Assembly: GCA_054661495.1 (NCBI GenBank)
Contig: BAAFSQ010000326.1
Coordinates: 1 to 10,414, forward strand
Source: Zygophlyctis sp. KS116
Taxonomy: Eukaryota; Fungi; Chytridiomycota
Reading direction: 5' to 3'
Length of the DNA stretch: 10,414 nt
Shown: one piece after another, positions 1 through 10,170 of the stretch
Numbering within the stretch: position 1 is the stretch's first letter
How the letters are laid out: every line of letters starts with the position of its first letter
The notes under the pieces: generated by a model
Told to the model about the DNA's origin: nothing
What the model saw: only the letters and a program-made list of their open reading frames with translations
The model's database searches: none
Program-made: the position numbers and the translations under genes

Positions 1-171
1 GGAAGGACTTACACCCCTTACTTCCGGAATACTGGCTCCAGATAGTGCATTTGGGTGATTTGGTGAGACTCTAACTGATTGCTGGAATGTTTCAGCAACT
101 GAGTTGATGATTTTACCAAATGTATTAGCTGCATTGATGCATGAGAGGAATGCAAGTACTATTATCAGCAT
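1..171 (-). CDS. 5' end (57 codons, runs off the window) of secreted ankyrin-like family paralog A
   Basis: Minus strand from ATG at 171 reads MLIIVLAFLSCINAANTFGKIINSVAETFQQSVRVSPNHPNALSGASIPEVRGVSPS. Bases 45-171 match 5985-6111 at 122/127 nt. Whether the frame stays intact beyond the window edge cannot be seen. Confidence 0.8.
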   Translation of the reverse strand, partial: MLIIVLAFLSCINAANTFGKIINSVAETFQQSVRVSPNHPNALSGASIPEVRGVSPS

Positions 172-1109: not shown

Positions 1110-1829
1110 CTATTCAAATACCTTTCCAGATCCTCTCCACAACTCTTTCATTACTTGACCTTGAATTATATGAGACTCAAACAATTGAGTAGCATTCTCT
1201 GGATTTACTCTTCCATACCAATGTCCAGAGAGAATTGGATTAGAATGATAAACAATACAATTCCCAGCAAACTTGTGTCCTCCAACATGAGAAATCCCAA
1301 AAACAAATACTTTATCCATCAGTCCTTTAGATTTTATAATTTCCTGAAATGCATCAATGATCAATGGACCAAGACTTCCACATCTTAAATCACGTTCTGA
1401 ATGTGTACAAACTAGTATATATGCCATCCCTACTAAATCACAAACATTTTGAGAATCAGATTTTGAATAATAGTTATTGACTATAGTCTCCAATTCTAGT
1501 TCTGAGTCTACCATAATTTTTTTAAAATCTGGAAATATTAGAAATTCATTCTCATGAATCTGATGAGACGCAGTTACCGAAAGTATAGATTTGTTTGGTA
1601 AAGATTTGAAATATTTTAATAGATTTGGTATAGATTTTACAGTTGAGTTTTTTATATCTGATGGCCATGGACTATTCAAGTAGCCTACCCAATGCCGATC
1701 ATATGGTTTAACTGATCCAATCAATGCACTTGTATGATCTATTGAATTCCAAACGCTTTTTGGGATTTTAGATAAACTGCAAGATTGACAACTTGAACAA
1801 TTCCAGGGGATTGACGATGGATAACTCAT
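1110..1829 (-). CDS. APD1: Sucrase/ferredoxin-like (Apd1/Aim32 family) thioredoxin-fold bis-histidyl [2Fe-2S] protein, 239 aa, no intron apparent
   Basis: C-X8-C (CTHSERDLRCG), HxGGH (SHVGGHKFAGN), WYGRVNP and the terminal LWRG are present. N-terminal cysteines and no obvious mitochondrial presequence favour Apd1 over Aim32. Confidence 0.85.
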   Translation of the reverse strand: MSYPSSIPWNCSSCQSCSLSKIPKSVWNSIDHTSALIGSVKPYDRHWVGYLNSPWPSDIKNSTVKSIPNLLKYFKSLPNKSILSVTASHQIHENEFLIFPDFKKIMVDSELELETIVNNYYSKSDSQNVCDLVGMAYILVCTHSERDLRCGSLGPLIIDAFQEIIKSKGLMDKVFVFGISHVGGHKFAGNCIVYHSNPILSGHWYGRVNPENATQLFESHIIQGQVMKELWRGSGKVFE

Positions 1830-1963
1830 TTCTTATATTAAAACTATTTTGTAATGAATTCACTCTTTAGAAAGACTAAAGTTTTAGTTTTACGACTTGG
1901 AGTTGGGTCTAAACTCTATGATCAAGTACAAAGTAGTACAAAGTAACTATAAAAAGTAAAATA

Positions 1964-2577
1964 TTAAAACATTTTTGCAGTATCAAGTCCAACAGATTTA
2001 AGATATTCAATTCTAAAAGAATTATTTTCTGATTCAAGAGAACGATTGACTGGAGTCCATTTAGGATCCTAAATTCCTTTAAAATCTTTAAAATTACCTC
2101 TTTAAAGATTCTCATTGCCTTAATGTAATTATTAGTATCCAGAATAAATCTATGATATATTCCTGCTGGAATCACTATTAAATCACCAATGGTTGTATGA
2201 ATACGAACCCATTCATCTTTAGAATTACGAACATCAAAGTATCCAGATCCTTCAACTACAAGTCTAATTTCTTCATCATCATGTAGATGTTCAGTAAAAA
2301 ATGATTTTAATTTTTCATCATAATTTGGTAATGTTTCTTTAGAGATTGAAATTAAATCTCTATTTTTATAACATCTTTGCTAAAAATTAAGAATAAAGAA
2401 ACTTACAGTCATCAATTCTGAGACTTTTTCTTCATAATTACTAGAAATGTCAAATTTCCAATGCAAAACTCCAATTTTTTCTAATTCTTCAAGACCGACG
2501 GAGACATTTGGAGATTTTTGATGGCTTTCTCTAGGATCAGCATCAGAGTTTGAATCATATTCCCATGCACTGACCAT
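1964..2577 (-). CDS. ADI1: Acireductone dioxygenase (methionine salvage, cupin fold), 185 aa; complement join(1964..2068,2098..2379,2407..2577)
   Basis: The spliced product has [39 protein letters not shown] and [16 protein letters not shown], including the ARD metal ligands H-x-H...E...H. Exons total 558 nt. Confidence 0.96.
2069..2097 (-). other. 29-nt intron (ADI1 intron 2)
   Basis: gtaattttaaagattttaaaggaatttag; removal restores IFKE-DPKWTP. Confidence 0.9.
2380..2406 (-). other. 27-nt intron (ADI1 intron 1)
   Basis: gtaagtttctttattcttaatttttag; phase 0, and its terminal TAG is an in-frame stop. Confidence 0.9.
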
Positions 2578-2718
2578 TTTATCCAAATTGAAAAGTTGAT
2601 GGTTCAACCTCCACACTGACGCAAAACTCTAAAGTACAATTTAGTCGCTGGGTTGCAAAGCTCATTGATCATTCAAGCGTTAAAGTTTAAAAGCTTTTGT
2701 CAAGAATTGGGTAGAATC
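2578..2718. promoter_or_regulatory. 141-bp divergent intergenic region, likely a bidirectional promoter
   Basis: Lies between the head-to-head ATGs of ADI1 (2577, minus) and the 642-aa gene (2719, plus). Confidence 0.5.
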
Positions 2719-4734
2719 ATGAAATTATTATTCTTGATTACATTGATTTCAATGGGAAATTCTATAGTTTCGGACATGAAATTTGGGAAAGATATTTCTA
2801 TTGAAAATCAAATTCAAAAACTATTGAAAAAGTTGATCAATTCGCAAACAAGAGTATCAACAGAATATGAACCCAAAATTATGTATTTTTTCTACTTTAG
2901 AATTGAATAGGTTCCCACCAGTCACTTATAAAATGAAAAAAGGTCTGTTTTCATCCTTTATTCATTTGAATTTTCATGGAGGGGAGTTGGAGTCTGAAAT
3001 TAGGAATAAAATGTCGTTTCCGGATGGTAATTTTTAGATTTAAATTTTTATAGATAATGGGTTTGTTACAATGAATGTTTTGGAAGTTTTGTTAGATCTG
3101 TGGGATTATAATGTAAAGGTTCCGATAAATGTTTTAAATAATGCACTTTCTGGAATAATGGATCATCAGGATAGGAATTCACCTAGATTTTTGCCAAAAT
3201 TTAGTTTTTGGACTCAGGAAGCTATTAAAACAAGATTAAATACTACAGGATATAGTGCTCATCCAACAAATATTGTAGTTCCTCTCAAAATGTATAAATC
3301 TATGAGTGGATTGGTTAATTTTGCTGTAAAGACTCTTAAATTACCTGGGAATGTAAAGCAATTGATTAATGTTGCAAATGATTTTTCAACAATTGGAGGT
3401 GTTATTTTTTCTATTCCACCTGATGCAGATGATACAGGATGTATGTTGGGTGTAACTTCTCAGCTTTTGAAAATGATCAAGGAAAATGATTTATTGAGAG
3501 GTCCTGCAAGTGAATATTTTACGACGATTTCAGATCCAAATAAGGAAGCTCTAGATTCATACGTGAAATATGCTTACAGACCTTACTCTGACAAAGTTGA
3601 TGAAAGCGTTATTGATCCGCGTACATATCATTGGATGCGCCATTTTTTAGCTGAAAGAAATGGATACGTTGACTTGATTACAACATGGTTTCAAAAGATT
3701 TCTGAAATACCTGAGCAAGGGGACTTTCAAAAAATGCCTTTTAGTGTGAATAATGTGGATGGTTCAGTTGTTGTTAATGGTCTTTATGGTATATTGGGAA
3801 CGCTTTTTACCCAACCTGTGAAATATGCATCCAAAATAACTTCGGAATTAGTTAAGCTCATAAGTGATAGTCTGGATCTTGTGCAATATATTCTAGAGAA
3901 TAATTTGATTGCTACTCATGCAGCTTCGATTCTTTTGTATTATCCTAGCAGATTTGCCTTTTATTATTTCATATCAAGACTTTGTAATTTGATGGAAAGT
4001 GGTCCTGAAAATTCTAAAGACCTACCGGTGGCATTTTCAGAGGTCATCTCTAATTATGGAAAAACTTTAAGGCATGCTATGCAAAAATATGGAACTGAAC
4101 AACTAATTTCTTTGAAAATAGATGATGTTTCAAAAGGAATGGTTTACTGGGATGATTTCTTAGGAAATGGAGACTTGAAGCCAAAGTATGAAGATCGTGT
4201 ATTCTCCACTTCAATGGCTCTTAATGCACTGATAAATACCTGGACTGTTAGGGATTACGATAAAGGAACCAAAAAGCTCAGATACGTTGATGAGGTTCCG
4301 CCGATTGTTGTTTCTTCTGCTGAAAGATCTGCTCAATTTTTGCTTTCAAACGAAGCAGATTTTCTGCCCCAGGAAAACGCATTCTTTTCTGCAAGTGTTA
4401 AAAATGAAGGGAGCTTACCTTTCTTTGGCGTCACTAACTATAGGAAATCAGTTGATGGACATAATTCATTAGATTGTACTGAAAGTCTTTATAAGGGAGT
4501 GCATTATGTATTTGGAGTAAAAGGACTGATGTCAGATACGGATTATAACTTACAATCCAAAGCCGGTTGCTTCAATATGTCTACGGGCAATCCAGATGTC
4601 GACTACAATAGGTAAATCTATAAATATCAATCTAAAACACTAGTCCTGATGCTGTTTTTCCTTATTGGAGCGCGCCTAGTTATACATATGCAGTCCGATT
4701 ACTATCGTTTGTGAAATACCGATCTCTATTATAG
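2719..4734 (+). CDS. Putative secreted 642-aa protein with class II terpene cyclase/prenyltransferase-like motifs; join(2719..2882,2911..3026,3054..4611,4644..4734)
   Basis: Three GT-AG introns (28, 27 and 32 nt) join an open 1929-nt CDS: MKLLFLITLISMGNS...FPDDNGFVTMNVLE...IPPDADDTGCMLG...IDPRTY...MPFSVNNVDGSVVVNGL...YYPSRFAFYYFISRL...WDDFLG...EDRVFSTSMALNAL...FPYWSAPSYTYAVRLLSFVKYRSLL*. The gene model is well supported. The function is inferred from motifs only. Confidence 0.85.
2883..2910 (+). other. 28-nt intron
   Basis: gtattttttctactttagaattgaatag; joins PKIM-FPPVTY in an open frame. Confidence 0.8.
3027..3053 (+). other. 27-nt intron
   Basis: gtaatttttagatttaaatttttatag; contains an in-frame TAG, and removal gives FPD-DNGFVT. 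Confidence 0.85.
4612..4643 (+). other. 32-nt intron
   Basis: gtaaatctataaatatcaatctaaaacactag; removal extends the ORF by SPDAVFPYWSAPSYTYAV...LL*. Confidence 0.8.
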
Positions 4735-4851
4735 AAAAAAAGCAGCAATTGCTAGTAGGAGCTAAATATAGTAAATGATCGTCCGATAAGAAAACTGAAA
4801 TTCATATGTCAAATAGCATTCTACTCTTAAGAATTTTATCGATTAAGAACT

Positions 4852-6111
4852 CTAAAGCACTGGATGGAAGCCCATTCCAAATCCATCAAGATATACTGGT
4901 TCTTCAAGTCTAGGTCTTTTAGCCAATGGAGCTTGTTCTCCTATAACCGCAGGCCTCTTTCTCTGAATATTCTCTAATACCCGTTTCACCCTTCCATATG
5001 TTGCTAGATTCTTTGAGTTTGTCATTTCTATAGCTTTTTTTAGCGGATCGGATCCTTTAGTATCTCGAAACTTTAAACGAGGATTTAATAATTCCATTCC
5101 AATACGATCGACCACATCGTCTGTAGCTTTTGACATTGCTGTTAATATACTGCTAACTGTTCTAGGATTCCAGACTTTCTGAGATAAGAAATAATCTATC
5201 GTGCTGACTGTCGGCTGGTGTTTCTTCTGGGAATACATCTTTAGAAAGTTTTCACTCCATTGACTGAGTTCATTGGGATTTTTAAAACTTTCTGTAGCCT
5301 TCTGCAAAACAGAGTCAACATACCATTTTCGTCGGTGATAAAAAGAAGATGACAATGCTTCTGTGTAGATATCCATGCGCATTTTAGGCTTTTCTTTGAC
5401 AACAAGATCAAGTACAGCCGTAAATGTCGGCCTTTGATCTTGATTAACAGATGACACGATCATTCTCCCGTAATTATCTAAAGAAGGATTCCTCTCAATT
5501 AACCACTTAACCATTTCAATGTGACCATAACGGGCAGCTAATGCTTCTGGTAGAAATCTGAAATCTTTGAATTGATAGATATTCTCTTTTCCTACCAGAT
5601 ATTTTAACAGTTCTAATTTTCCATTGGCAAAAATATTGTCTATATCATTGTGGTTGAGTAGGAAATTCTTCTCATCCTTAGCGCTGCTAAAGAATATTTC
5701 AAGATTGTTGATCCTAGTTTGGTCAGATATTTCCTGATTCCCAAGATCTCGCACGATATAGTTTATTATATCTTTGAAAGTTTCTTTCTGTAACTTTGGA
5801 TCTTTATAGGCCTTTGAAGAAAAATATTTAATGATTTCCCGCTCACCCATAACTTTTCCAATGATCGCTTCTTTAAATGACAAGAAAGGAAGGATCTTAT
5901 GATTTACTAATAGACTTGGAACACTATGGGCATCCCATACTTCATGAATGCTTTTGGAATTATGACGTAAATGGGATAAAATAGGTGCATTTGGGTGATT
6001 TGGTGAGACTCTAACTGATTGCTGGAATGTTTCAGCTACTGAGTTGATAATTTTCCCAAATGAATTAGCTGCATTGATGCATGAGAGAAATGCAAGTACT
6101 ATTATCAGCAT
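4852..6111 (-). CDS. Secreted ankyrin-like family paralog B, 419 aa, intronless (true start probably 6111, not 6321)
   Basis: MLIIVLAFLSCINA is signal-peptide-like and aligns with the starts of paralogs A and C. It has ankyrin-like NGKLELLKYLV and ALAARYGHIEMVKWLIE, a basic C-terminal cluster RKRP...AKRPRL, and the tail FGMGFHPVL. Confidence 0.85.
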   Translation of the reverse strand: MLIIVLAFLSCINAANSFGKIINSVAETFQQSVRVSPNHPNAPILSHLRHNSKSIHEVWDAHSVPSLLVNHKILPFLSFKEAIIGKVMGEREIIKYFSSKAYKDPKLQKETFKDIINYIVRDLGNQEISDQTRINNLEIFFSSAKDEKNFLLNHNDIDNIFANGKLELLKYLVGKENIYQFKDFRFLPEALAARYGHIEMVKWLIERNPSLDNYGRMIVSSVNQDQRPTFTAVLDLVVKEKPKMRMDIYTEALSSSFYHRRKWYVDSVLQKATESFKNPNELSQWSENFLKMYSQKKHQPTVSTIDYFLSQKVWNPRTVSSILTAMSKATDDVVDRIGMELLNPRLKFRDTKGSDPLKKAIEMTNSKNLATYGRVKRVLENIQRKRPAVIGEQAPLAKRPRLEEPVYLDGFGMGFHPVL

Positions 6112-6179
6112 TCCAGAATTTGAAGTGATTTTGACCGATTTGAAACTAGCGGCGATCTTAATTGAGCCGCAACCGAGCC
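5985..6179. repeat. Dispersed direct repeat, copy 2
   Basis: Near-identical to 45-242. Confidence 0.95.
6149..6170. promoter_or_regulatory. Putative promoter dyad upstream of paralog B
   Basis: gcggcgatcttaattgagccgc, identical to 212-233. Confidence 0.35.
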
Positions 6180-6387
6180 TTTCATTTGCTCGTCTTTTTC
6201 TGCCGTCTTTCAATGTTTCATGTGATGTTATCCCCATGTGAAATAGTCTTACAATATCACAACTGATGTAAGAACCATAAAAACAACTGTGGGGATAGCT
6301 TTCCCACATCTGCTCCCGCATAACCTTGAGTGTTAAAATGGATTTAGTTCTTAGCTGATAGGCGTAAGAAATTTATTAATGATAAGC

Positions 6388-7662
6388 CTATAAAATATCC
6401 ACAGCATCAGAATCCACAGGATGGAATGGCATTCCAAAAATTTCTACTTCATCTCCAAGTTTAAGTCTTTTGGGTGCTGAACCATGATCACTTAACTCAA
6501 CGGACATTTTGATTTTTTGTAGAATCTTTTTAGCCTTTCCAAAAAGTCCTTCATACATTGGATTGACAATCTCTATAGCTCTTTGTAGTGGATCATATCC
6601 GATTGAATCCAGGAAATGGAAGCGAGGATTTAGTAATTCCATTCCTATACGTTCAAGAACAGCATCAGCTGCTTTAGACATGGCAAGTACTAAGCTACGA
6701 ACTGTTCTTGGATTCCAAACTTGCTGAGAAAAGAAATAATCTAAATTTCCAACTGTCGGTTTCCAATTTGGCTTAGAATACATCTTTAAAAAACCTTCAC
6801 TCCATTGGCTTAAACTGTTTGGTTCAGTAAAGCTTTCAGAGACCTTCTTCAAAACGAACCCAGCATAATCTGCTCGATTGCCCAAAAAACAAGTTGCCAA
6901 TGCAAAAGCAAAAATATCCATTCGCCTTCTCGGCATTTCCTTGGCAGCAGTTTCAAGAATGGTGGCCAAAGTTTGCTTTTTATCATTAAGAATAGAACCC
7001 GATATTGAGTTTTTGTAATTCAAATTAGCAAGATTCTTGCCTAAAATCCACTTAATCATTTCGGAGTGGCCATTCTGAGCAGCTAACTGAGAAGGTAGAT
7101 ATCTTAAATCTCTGAATTGATCAAAATTCTGATTTTCTACAAAGTATTTCAAAAGGTCCAATTTTCCATACTGAAATATCAGGTTAATATCATTGAGGCT
7201 AACGCTGATATTTTCCACACCTTTGACACCAGCTATGAATATTTCAAGATTCTCTATCCGAGTTTGATCTGATATTTGATTATTCTCCAAATTTCTTAAG
7301 ATATAGATCAATATCTCTTGATATGATCTTTCCTGCAATAATTGGTCATCATAGTTCTTTGTAGCAAAATGTCTTATGACATCTTTTTCATCCATTACTC
7401 CAGTATTGATAGCTTCACTAAAATTCATATCTGAAGGTAGAGTTGGGGTAACTATCCGATGTGATTCAGCAGGTGCAGTCCATTTATCTATCCACTCATC
7501 AAAGGAATTATCAAGTTCTAAATCGGACCAATCAAGAGCATATTGGTGATTTGCAGCGAATCGGACTGATTGCTGTACCGCTTCACTAACGGCGTTAACT
7601 GCCAAATGTTGATTGTCTACTGCATTAATGCATGATATCCATGAAACGACAAGTATAAGCAT
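6388..7662 (-). CDS. Secreted ankyrin-like family paralog C, 424 aa, intronless
   Basis: Colinear with B throughout: SCINA, QQSVR, ISDQTRIxNLEIF, GKLxLLKY, LAAxxGHxEMxKW, LSQWSExFLKMYS, VWNPRTV, RIGMELLNPR, PKRLKL and FGMPFHPV. Confidence 0.9.
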   Translation of the reverse strand: MLILVVSWISCINAVDNQHLAVNAVSEAVQQSVRFAANHQYALDWSDLELDNSFDEWIDKWTAPAESHRIVTPTLPSDMNFSEAINTGVMDEKDVIRHFATKNYDDQLLQERSYQEILIYILRNLENNQISDQTRIENLEIFIAGVKGVENISVSLNDINLIFQYGKLDLLKYFVENQNFDQFRDLRYLPSQLAAQNGHSEMIKWILGKNLANLNYKNSISGSILNDKKQTLATILETAAKEMPRRRMDIFAFALATCFLGNRADYAGFVLKKVSESFTEPNSLSQWSEGFLKMYSKPNWKPTVGNLDYFFSQQVWNPRTVRSLVLAMSKAADAVLERIGMELLNPRFHFLDSIGYDPLQRAIEIVNPMYEGLFGKAKKILQKIKMSVELSDHGSAPKRLKLGDEVEIFGMPFHPVDSDAVDIL

Positions 7663-7797: not shown

Positions 7798-8310
7798 TTA
7801 AAGAGGAATATTGCCATATTCTGAGATACTCACTGAAAGAAACGCTGAATACCAGTTCCTTGTCTTCAGCTAGAGTTTGTTCAAATCTTGATGTTTTACC
7901 TTGTTCTCCTACATTTACTGACTGAATATTTTCTTAAGCTTTCTTAACTCTTCCATATGTTGCTTGATTCTTTGAGGCGTTATTTATATAGCTTTTGGTA
8001 GATTCACTAAACTTTTAACTGTTGCTGTTGATATTGATATTGCAGTTAATATACTGCTTATTTTGGTATGATTCCAGAATTTTTGGTAAAAAATAATAAT
8101 CCAAAGAGCTGAATGTCGACTGCATCTGATGAAATTATCTTAAGATAAAAATTCGACCAAACTGACTCATACTCTTGGAATCTCCCCATAATCGTAGTTG
8201 ATATTATTCTAAAAGAAAGCAGATCCCAAAGCTTCGGCATAGACATTCATATGGTTTTTAGGATCTTCCTCTGCAACCTGATCAAGTATAGCACCAAAAG
8301 TTGGCTTTTG
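7798..8310 (-). pseudogene. Degenerate paralog D (3' part) of the secreted ankyrin-like family
   Basis: Minus-strand fragments align with B: QKPTFGAILDQVAEEDPKNHMNVYAEALGSAFF* (B: QRPTFTAVLDLVVKEKPKMRMDIYTEALSSSFY), WSNFYLK, WNHTKISSILTAIS and KAI*IT/SKNQATYGRVKKA*ENIQ (B: KAIEMTNSKNLATYGRVKRVLENIQ). There are several stops, frameshifts and a deletion. The 3' boundary is approximate. Confidence 0.9.
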
Positions 8311-8324
8311 TTAGGTTAATTGCC

Positions 8325-8365
8325 CAATATATTGCTTAATATATTGTATATATTAGAATATATTA
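8325..8365. repeat. Left subterminal repeats of the hAT element
   Basis: Tandem variants caatatattg (a perfect palindrome), taatatattg, gtatatatta and gaatatatta. Confidence 0.7.
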
Positions 8366-8938
8366 AAACCAGTTCCGATGCGATTAAAGGTAGTAGTTTA
8401 ATGAACAAGCGGAAACGGGATGATGGCTCTGCTGATGAAGCGTTCAAGGATTTTCGTAAAAATGTGTACCCACTACTCTATCGGTACTTATGCTGATCAG
8501 TCTGATGAGGATTTAATGGACTACCATATATGTCTGGCCTGCCATCCGTCAGGAAAGTTGGAATTAGGAACAACAAGAACATTGCCTAAATATGTGTATA
8601 AATCCTGCGCTTCTATAAATTTGAATGGACAATTAAGTTTTAAAAGTGGTTACCGGAATCTCGTGAGTCACTACGATAAGCAACATAATGGATGGCGTGG
8701 CATGGTAGTTGCTGCATACCAAAAAGGTGAAACTCAGCTTTCTATATAAAGATGCCATAATCACAAACCAATGGATGGAATTAATCATTGATAACAATTT
8801 ACCTGTTACGTATGTTGAAAAGAAAGGATTCACCAGGTTTACAAATATTCAGGATACGATATGTTACAAGACGTTTTTAAAAAGAATGAAGCTTGTAATG
8901 GAATATATTGAAGAGTTTATGCGAAAAAGACTAGCAAG

Positions 8939-8961
8939 GTATTATTTTGTTTGATAAAAAG
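8939..8961 (+). other. 23-nt intron in the transposase
   Basis: gtattattttgtttgataaaaag; removal joins KRLAS-VKRFGLMI in frame. Confidence 0.7.
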
Positions 8962-9598
8962 TGTAAAACGATTTGGATTGATGATTTATGGATGGTCGAG
9001 TAATTATACACATTATTTGGCAGTTTTTATAGTCACAAAAGAATATGGAACTGAATTGTTGTCATTTTCCCCTTTAAATGATGAAACTTCACTTACTACG
9101 GCTTGCATGGCAGATTCGATTGATTGGATTATTGATTACAATAAATTGGATTATAGCAAATGCTTATTTCTTGTGGGAGATAATGCTGAAGTTAATCCAT
9201 CCTAAGCTAGAAAAATTTGGCTATTCAAAATAAAGTTCTACAGTCAGACCAATTAAAGTCGCTTCTAAAAAAGGTGCATAATATGATGAAGAAATTAAGT
9301 ACAACAAAGAGACGTGCACTTGTCAAGACAAAGACGCAGCTTCGCCCAACGTTTTTAAATGCTACAAGATGGTCAAGCTGCTTTAATATGATAAAAAGAT
9401 TTTTTGAAATAATCGGACCAGTCACAGAATTATTTATTTACGACAGAGAAGATGATAGAGTTTCAGAAGATGCGCCGGCAGACCATTATAGCCGATCTAA
9501 AATGTATTCTCTCATACCAAATGCTGATGAACGACTGATGCTGCAAGAATACTATGATATGTTGCATCCATTTGAAAGCATAACCAGTAGCTTACAAG

Positions 9599-9625
9599 GT
9601 TGACTTATTTTAATTAAAATGACAG
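9599..9625 (+). other. 27-nt intron in the transposase
   Basis: gttgacttattttaattaaaatgacag; contains an in-frame TGA, and removal gives SSLQG-KKVNLYEAR. Confidence 0.8.
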
Positions 9626-10170
9626 GTAAAAAGGTTAACCTCTATGAAGCACGCCTTTTTTTTGATGTTTGTATGCGAAGAAGTCAAGCTTTAAATTTCC
9701 CAGCAACTAGAGAAGCAATGAAGGAGTATTTGGGAGAAGGTGCAGCCACTGGCAGCAAAAGTAAAAATTCGCATGATTTCGTGAATGGAATTATCAAAAT
9801 CCTAAAAGGTGGTGAAGCCTTTTTGACAAATGATGAGATTGGAGCTGTCGAGGTCTTTAAGAAACCCGAAATAATCACTGCGGCTACAGATTACAGCGGT
9901 CTATCACCCGATGAAGAGGTTGCTGCACGTTTAGCTCCCAGAAAAACCTCAAATTATTATGATGGATCATGGATTCCTTCCACTACTTGTGAAGTTGAGC
10001 GTTTCTTTTCACAATGCAAACTTAATCATTCAGAAAAGAGATTGGCGCTAACGAATGACCACTTAGAAATGATTATGTTCCTCAAGTTTCATAAACAGAA
10101 ATGGACAGTGGAAATTATTGATCAAGCCCTGAAAGCTGGTAAAGATGTGGATAGTCTATAATTACCGCTA

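Follow-up and report, generated by a model that had tools for sequence, protein, structure and literature searches.

A tandem, mosaic family of putatively exported ankyrin proteins with a predicted nuclear-import tail in a zoosporic fungus

Expansions of secreted ankyrin-repeat effectors are known in plasmodiophorids, PbANK1 of Plasmodiophora brassicae being an example (PMC12503489), and ankyrin nucleomodulins are known from intracellular bacteria, among them Anaplasma AnkA, Orientia Ank13 and Coxiella AnkG (PMC7819608, PMC8406279, PMC8824381). Here we describe a gene family on contig BAAFSQ010000326.1 of Zygophlyctis sp. KS116, all 10,414 nucleotides of which were analysed and are called the window below (it is the entire contig C326 of an assembly of 12.7 Mb in 1175 contigs, with a GC content of ~34%). 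The minus strand of the window carries four members of the family, A to D, of which B and C are intact. The explanation that we tentatively favour is that B and C belong to a young, tandem and recombining family of ~420-residue exported ankyrin proteins that act in another cell, likeliest in its nucleus. The predicted order of modules is a signal peptide, a disordered and fast-evolving leader, an ankyrin solenoid, a disordered tail with a basic cluster of the nuclear localisation signal (NLS) type and, at the C-terminus, the peptide FG(x)xFHPV; the family is apparently confined to a single lineage of freshwater zoosporic fungi. Ankyrin effector candidates that are secreted, and proteins that combine export with an NLS, are already known in kind, whereas the family itself, the module order, the C-terminal peptide and the occurrence in a zoosporic fungus appear to be undescribed.

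The likeness to the plasmodiophorid effectors is that of a family in a eukaryotic parasite, present in tens of copies, which joins a signal peptide to an ankyrin solenoid and conserved structural residues to variable surfaces (PMC12503489), but apart from the generic repeat no sequence kinship is detectable. Standard ankyrin models recognise the plasmodiophorid proteins, some of which carry SKP1 or BTB domains (PMC12503489), whereas the present family scores below Pfam thresholds, is produced by a zoosporic fungus, and has a leader, an NLS-type tail and an FGMxFHPV end of its own. With the bacterial nucleomodulins it shares the ankyrin scaffold and, presumptively, the logic of export followed by nuclear import; the bacterial proteins, however, depend for delivery on type I or type IV secretion and not on a signal peptide for the endoplasmic reticulum (ER), and show no sequence kinship to it. 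Orientia Ank13 enters the nucleus by means of its ankyrin repeats themselves (the RaDAR pathway) and not by a classical NLS. The CRN nuclear effectors of oomycetes are secreted proteins of a eukaryotic pathogen that act in the host nucleus (PMC4695088), as may be the case here, but CRNs carry unrelated C-terminal domains behind a defined N-terminal region for translocation (PMC4695088), and no such motif was identified in the present family.

B and C align end to end with 45% identity (E-value 3e-125), C being upstream of B with 276 bases between the C stop and the B start codon. A preliminary description, made from the letters of the window, had reported four related minus-strand copies (A partial, B, C and a pseudogene D), with B and C each having a hydrophobic N-terminus ending in SCINA, a basic cluster near the end, a conserved FGM(G/P)FHPV and no intron. 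The four copies were confirmed by tblastn, by their open reading frames (ORFs) and by the alignment of B with C, and by translation all of these features of B and C are where they had been described. The ORFs of B and C are uninterrupted and collinear with all paralogues, and the genes are therefore intronless. The features of the two intact copies are the following (pLDDT, predicted local distance difference test; dN/dS, ratio of nonsynonymous to synonymous divergence).

4852-6111, minus strand: copy B, intact, 419 codons (4855-6111) and a TAG stop; an ORF beginning at the Met common to all copies, with an 88%-identity orthologue in a metagenome contig (dN/dS 0.28)
6070-6111, minus strand: signal-peptide-like N-terminus of B, 14 residues with the end INA and a predicted cut after Ala14, from conservation in the family alignment (A1), hydrophobicity and the -3/-1 rule
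5905-6069, minus strand: post-signal leader of B, residues 15-69, predicted disordered and fast-evolving, from pLDDT and windowed dN/dS
4942-5904, minus strand: predicted ankyrin-repeat solenoid core of B, residues 70-390, from pLDDT, structural matches and dN/dS
5464-5631, minus strand: stretch of B with an ankyrin match at sequence level, residues 161-216, from Pfam, the family profile and chains in the PDB
4906-4962, minus strand: basic cluster of B, residues 384-402, KR, an 11-residue spacer and KRPR (bipartite NLS pattern), from translation, paralogues and the structural model
4858-4881, minus strand: C-terminal motif FGMGFHPV of B, residues 411-418, from translation and kept in paralogues
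6388-7662, minus strand: copy C, intact, 424 codons (6391-7662) and a TAG stop; an ORF with 45% identity to B
7621-7662, minus strand: signal-peptide-like N-terminus of C, 14 residues, the frame closing 19 codons upstream of the Met
6457-6480, minus strand: basic cluster SAPKRLKL of C, residues 395-402, with a monopartite K-K/R-x-K/R core
6415-6438, minus strand: motif FGMPFHPV of C, residues 409-416, followed by 8 further residues

The case for export begins at the N-terminus, where strong comparative evidence indicates that the 14 residues behave like a cleaved signal peptide, in agreement with the preliminary description. All N-terminally complete copies start with the conserved Met, followed by 8-11 hydrophobic residues and then C-I-N/S-A. 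Across the family alignment Ala14 is invariant and Ile12 nearly so; since these would be positions -1 and -3 of a signal peptidase site, the pattern resembles the conservation of a cleavage site. The hydrophobic run, with its core at residues 2-9 or 2-12, reaches Kyte-Doolittle values of 2.9-3.8 over 8 residues, and a hydrophobicity scan found no second membrane-like segment elsewhere in the protein. By a heuristic test the anatomy of a signal peptide is present in 22 of the 24 N-terminally complete members, distant ones included: a distant copy on contig C6 has a textbook 20-residue signal with a Lys in the n-region, and five distant metagenomic relatives (~25% identity) also begin with signal-like N-termini. 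Upstream of the Met there is no conservation beyond the closest paralogues, and the reading frame closes there. Short signals look normal in this organism, because its own calreticulin/calnexin-type genes (L047 on contig C50 and L048 on contig C336) carry signals of 15-16 residues. With 0-1 cysteines, the mature proteins are typical of folds found in the cytosol and not of extracellular ones.

These observations bear on the possibility that the proteins work inside the fungus, either held on the ER or nuclear envelope by an uncleaved N-terminal anchor or translated from a downstream Met (~residue 88) to yield a nuclear ankyrin regulator of the fungus's own genes, which we consider unlikely though deserving of attention. 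It is normal for an ankyrin protein with an NLS to be endogenous, either nuclear or cytosolic; a Met stands just ahead of the folded core in most copies; and the case for export is built on sequence. On the other hand, a hydrophobic run of 8-11 residues is too short for a membrane span, positions -1 and -3 are the most conserved N-terminal residues, as expected of a cleavage site, and lineage-specific tandem expansion, pseudogenes and mosaic exchange, described below, are unusual for housekeeping regulators. If the proteins did act inside the fungus, one would have to explain why a nuclear-type protein has a conserved signal-like N-terminus. Separately, a shared cassette of upstream region plus signal was considered and rejected, because A and one close paralogue are the only other genes with the region found upstream of B. 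The 15-16-residue signals of the calreticulin/calnexin-type genes can also help to calibrate other secretome calls in the genome.

For the exported protein that we favour, the core offers a candidate binding scaffold. In an AlphaFold2 model of B built on a 13-member alignment (mean pLDDT 78), residues 70-390 are all-helical, with pLDDT mostly >85 and about 9 helix pairs, and residues 13-69 and 391-419 have pLDDT <50. At the level of sequence, recognisable ankyrin is confined to residues about 161-240: the Pfam Ank_2 model matches B and C at residues ~161-216 in both, with 24.0 bits against a cut-off of 27.3 and hence below threshold, and a profile of the family matches thousands of multi-ankyrin proteins via positions 163-210 and, in the PDB, designed and natural ankyrin chains at E-values of 1e-16 to 1e-11. 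Structural comparison with Foldseek against the PDB gave only generic helical-repeat matches with E-values above 9e-3, and nothing below 1e-3. VIA-align, run against 48,161 PDB representatives, placed ankyrin domains at nearly all of its top 15 positions, with Z-scores of 8.4-10.7 that lie within the range helical repeats can reach without close kinship; the top matches comprised vaccinia K1 (Z 10.7, 261 residues aligned), NOMPC, RNase L, DARPins, EHMT1, ASB7 and ankyrin-B. We assign the ankyrin fold from the sequence matches and the consistent structural enrichment taken together, and in the model the core is one divergent ankyrin solenoid flanked by a leader and a tail predicted to be disordered. 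The two ankyrin-like segments of the preliminary description thus kept their ankyrin nature and lost their separateness, the whole core of residues ~70-390 forming a single solenoid by AlphaFold2 and VIA-align.

The best structural match, vaccinia K1 (PDB 3kea), is a compact, irregular ankyrin solenoid used against the host and aligns across model residues 76-384, but with 12% identity, a root-mean-square deviation of 7 Å and the Z-score, noted above, that unrelated helical repeats can reach. Poxvirus ankyrin host-range proteins have no signal peptide, and a Pfam search with E-values up to 1 found no PRANC or F-box domain in B or C. Pfam likewise returned no family name for the family or its distant relatives. 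The ESM Atlas yielded generic ankyrin clusters and a weak OspC-domain neighbour; recognition fell below the mark at which the tool is useful, and we give this result no weight.

The tail follows directly on the solenoid. In B the last helix ends in RKR and KRPRL follows eleven residues on, which fits a bipartite KR-x11-K-R-x-R; the cluster takes in the end of the helix and part of the disordered tail (pLDDT <50). The importin-alpha consensus of Kosugi et al. 2009 is reportedly either bipartite, KR-x10-12-K(K/R)x(K/R), or monopartite, K(K/R)x(K/R). Four proteins (B, its ENA orthologue, C418_4 and the JGI copy) have the bipartite form with an 11-residue spacer, and C, C31, C126_3, C418_2 and C418_1 have the monopartite core; the core reads KRLK, the core of the c-Myc type, in C and the C31 copy, and KKPR in others. 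By our reading of the alignment K-K/R-x-K/R is kept in about 9 of 12 readable tails, and two distant relatives, P0028 and P0091, likewise have a basic cluster at the end. As the preliminary description had held, the basic cluster is of NLS type: it fits the classical importin-alpha consensus and is kept in most copies, in a segment predicted to be disordered, although nuclear import itself is a prediction.

Whether such a cluster would serve nuclear import can be weighed against a second possibility, that the proteins are secreted effectors acting in the host cytoplasm or at a membrane and that the basic cluster is a lipid-binding, cell-entry or partner-binding patch. It draws on the same evidence for secretion and the ankyrin fold, and the C6 copy and most distant relatives keep the signal peptide and the solenoid without the basic cluster, which argues that nuclear targeting is not a property of the wider family. 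The expanded clade, however, keeps the specific K-K/R-x-K/R form, with the exact spacing of 11 in four copies, and charge alone needs neither; we judge this alternative to be quite unlikely.

Beyond the basic cluster, the terminal peptide FG(x)xFHPV is kept in most tails. The C6 copy, at 25% identity, retains FGMP followed by F or L yet has no basic cluster, and this survival argues for selection on the peptide itself. The role of FGMxFHPV as a binding motif, put forward in the preliminary description, is a candidate one suggested by its conservation. A different role would follow if the protein were a secreted precursor in which the dibasic sites of the tail are kexin-type cleavage sites, the FGMxFHPV peptide being released or removed as a propeptide. 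KR or KK pairs do stand ahead of the conserved terminal peptide in nearly all tails, and secreted fungal precursors are well known to be processed by kexin (PMC6339444). The peptide precursors known to be processed in this way, though, contain repeated, nearly identical motifs (PMC6339444), whereas here a single tail follows a 320-residue folded domain, and the tail alignment showed no internal repeats of the terminal peptide such as define the repeated-peptide precursors of KEX2 (PMC6339444). The dibasic pair is, moreover, mostly followed by Pro, and the C6 copy keeps its FGMP motif without a dibasic site, so that a processed precursor seems improbable to us. The tail was also considered as a shared module and rejected, a genome search with the 40-residue tail having matched family copies only.

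The family extends well beyond the intact pair. The other two members in the window, and the transposon remnant next to them, are these.

1-171, minus strand: copy A, the initial 57 codons, truncated where the contig begins; tblastn 98% identity to B residues 1-42, a DNA repeat of 45-242 with 5985-6179, and translation
about 7823-8355, minus strand: copy D, a decayed pseudogene with the C-terminal half only; tblastn pieces 8310-8017 and 7975-7823
8420-10161, plus strand: remnant of a hAT-type transposase, five ORFs in different frames; context, outside the family

Three-frame reading of the interior of D showed 1 TGA, 1 TAG and 2-3 TAA codons in addition to frame changes. Genome-wide there are 16 loci in five clusters, on contigs C326 (4), C418 (6), C126 (3), C818 (2) and C31 (1), and one extra distant single copy on C6 with 25-28% identity. 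Four of the five clusters touch contig ends, and two contigs (loci L006 on C818 and L020 on C418) stop at the same residue of a copy (both ...AMSKASN), which suggests a collapsed or unresolved repeat; with clusters at contig ends and breaks at the same residue, the true copy number is probably higher. Six copies are full length with a complete tail, the remainder showing contig-end cuts, 5' truncation, internal deletions, a changed or shortened tail, or decay. One of the C418 copies (L020, 2560-3999) has an in-frame insertion of ~70 residues, a second version of the core's first helical repeats, and ends early, just past the RKR of the last helix.

Outside this genome, only two close relatives (88% and 57% identity) were found among 5.8 billion clustered proteins, both in lake-type metagenomes. 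A profile search of 1.84 billion representatives gave about 20 clusters with a full-length match, and all ten of those looked up were metagenomic; the other ~2700 profile matches were ordinary multi-ankyrin proteins matched over one repeat pair. Broadly conserved orthologues in free-living species, which the preliminary description held would count against it, did not appear: neither the clustered-protein nor the profile search found an orthologue in a named genome, those of named free-living species included. A scan of metagenome contigs produced 15 loci, at all but the top match of which, L032, the match was confined to the ankyrin part of the query (residues ~90-260); L032 was rejected as a family member, being an ankyrin protein with many repeats whose contig looks bacterial. 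The distant member P0078, on a 26-kb metagenome contig of a compact eukaryotic genome (L027; 7895-8956 and 9428-10498), is preceded by a gene of similar size, with 353 residues and no Pfam match, and the two may form a tandem pair there as well.

The copies with basic tails form one clade (support 99/98) in a maximum-likelihood tree. Within it, the ENA protein groups with B, and the JGI protein with the third C126 copy; the lake metagenomes that contain the orthologues are ENA ERZ19571628 and JGI 3300046808 and 3300043548. These orthologue pairs imply that the duplications predate the split from the metagenome relatives and that the copies have been maintained since. The ENA contig (L017) is collinear with window positions 1978-6179 at 93% DNA identity. 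Synteny ends just upstream of B (beyond 6320 in the window; 1-1188 in L017), where a Na/H exchanger gene takes the place of C, D and the hAT remnant, so the boundary of the array differs between close relatives. Cargo of a transposon or a viral insert was rejected as an origin of the locus, B and its neighbours being collinear with the relative at that identity among ordinary genes. Together with the 16 loci, the tandem arrays and the decayed copies, this supports a lineage-specific, tandemly arrayed family with birth-and-death turnover, as had been proposed.

Pairwise dN/dS is 0.3-0.6 between paralogues, compared with the 0.28 between B and its orthologue, and it is 0.12-0.3 in the core and 0.6-1.1 in the leader and tail; windowed values for B are 0.12-0.5 in the core and 0.55-0.96 in the leader. 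Exchange of segments between copies is common. The DNA of C and the C31 copy is 90-98% identical over the last ~100 codons and 45-64% before them; the first part of one C818 copy matches C418_4 (93-99% identity) and the second part matches B (93-98%); C126_1 and C418_4 have a common 5' end, and C418_2 and C418_3 a common block with 97-98% identity. Copy A is 98% B-like for 42 residues and then has the sequence type of the pair formed by C126_3 and its JGI orthologue, marking an apparent recombination junction near residue 42. By these comparisons the genes are under purifying selection (dN/dS ~0.3-0.5) and visibly mosaic through gene conversion, and are evidently functional genes that diversify by duplication, decay and mosaic recombination.

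That pattern also speaks to whether the array is non-functional or selfish DNA, decaying duplicates carried with transposons. A hAT remnant does lie beside D, several copies are truncated or decayed, and arrays stand at contig ends. Against this, at least 6 copies have full open frames, dN/dS is low between orthologues and in the core, and B with its neighbours is collinear in a relative that has no adjacent transposon. The selection data bring such a reading close to exclusion, and we regard it as scarcely credible.

Under the explanation that we favour, the protein would enter the ER and be secreted, and would then reach the cytoplasm of another cell, host or prey. There importin-alpha would pick it up via the basic cluster; in the nucleus the ankyrin surface, as a protein-binding scaffold, would bind a target, and the tail peptide might provide a second point of docking. 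We infer all of these steps, from secretion through uptake by another cell and nuclear import to the target. Since a signal peptide removes a protein from its own cytosol, its combination with an ankyrin fold, few cysteines and an NLS-type tail points to action in another cell, most simply in the nucleus, which is reasonable logic and of that inferential kind.

Several points weigh against this explanation. The signal, with 14 residues and no charged n-region, is at the short end of the range, and a pattern as brief as K-K/R-x-K/R often arises by chance. The tail is missing from two genomic copies, and one metagenomic orthologue stops short of FHPV. In the tail region dN/dS is near 1 and synonymous divergence is unusually low; with gene conversion at work, part of the tail conservation is homogenisation and not selection. 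We know of no uptake mechanism for chytrid proteins. The organism itself displays chitin synthases (at least 8 loci in the genome) and a gene for a radial-spoke protein, which mark it as a chitin-making, flagellated eukaryote, and neither trait shows it to be a parasite. ATP/ADP (TLC) transporters are typical of the intracellular Rozella and microsporidia; a search of the genome for one gave no match, and control genomes were equally silent. The sole match to the small-subunit ribosomal RNA model (C172, 19633-20504) is short and split, with 182.9 and 32.4 bits and model positions 623-1823 in ~870 bases, and may be organellar or fragmentary.

The overall interpretation of the preliminary description is thus partly supported, delivery to a host nucleus keeping its conditional status. 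In its fullest form, in which an early-diverging chytrid-like fungus delivers to the host nucleus an ankyrin family diversified by segment exchange between tandem copies, with FGMxFHPV as a docking motif for a host factor, we consider it possible but doubtful. If true, aquatic zoosporic fungi would gain their first described nucleus-targeted effector family. A literature search found no molecularly described effectors of such fungi, and the chytrid effectors it did find are those of the plant pathogen Synchytrium. The family provides a compact candidate set with separable modules (signal peptide, leader, ankyrin core, basic cluster and tail peptide), and the mosaic exchange between its copies is a clear example of how such families diversify.

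The surroundings of the array fit the preliminary description in part. A transposon lies nearby, namely the hAT transposase remnant listed above, of which only the C-terminal dimerisation domain reaches the Pfam cut-off (22.2 bits compared with 21.4). It abuts the truncated D, and its insertion may have cut D. The first of its ORFs resembles a BED-type zinc finger. Three of the four neighbouring genes outside the family had been said to have 2-3 introns each; of the two checked, the acireductone dioxygenase (ARD) gene (1909-2616, minus strand) has at least 2 coding pieces, and the Suc_Fer-like gene (1110-1829, minus strand) is uninterrupted. B is also adjoined by a 514-residue ORF (3071-4615, plus strand) with no Pfam match, and an ORF of the same length lies at the equivalent place beside the orthologue of B, on the metagenome contig with 93% DNA identity across the region.

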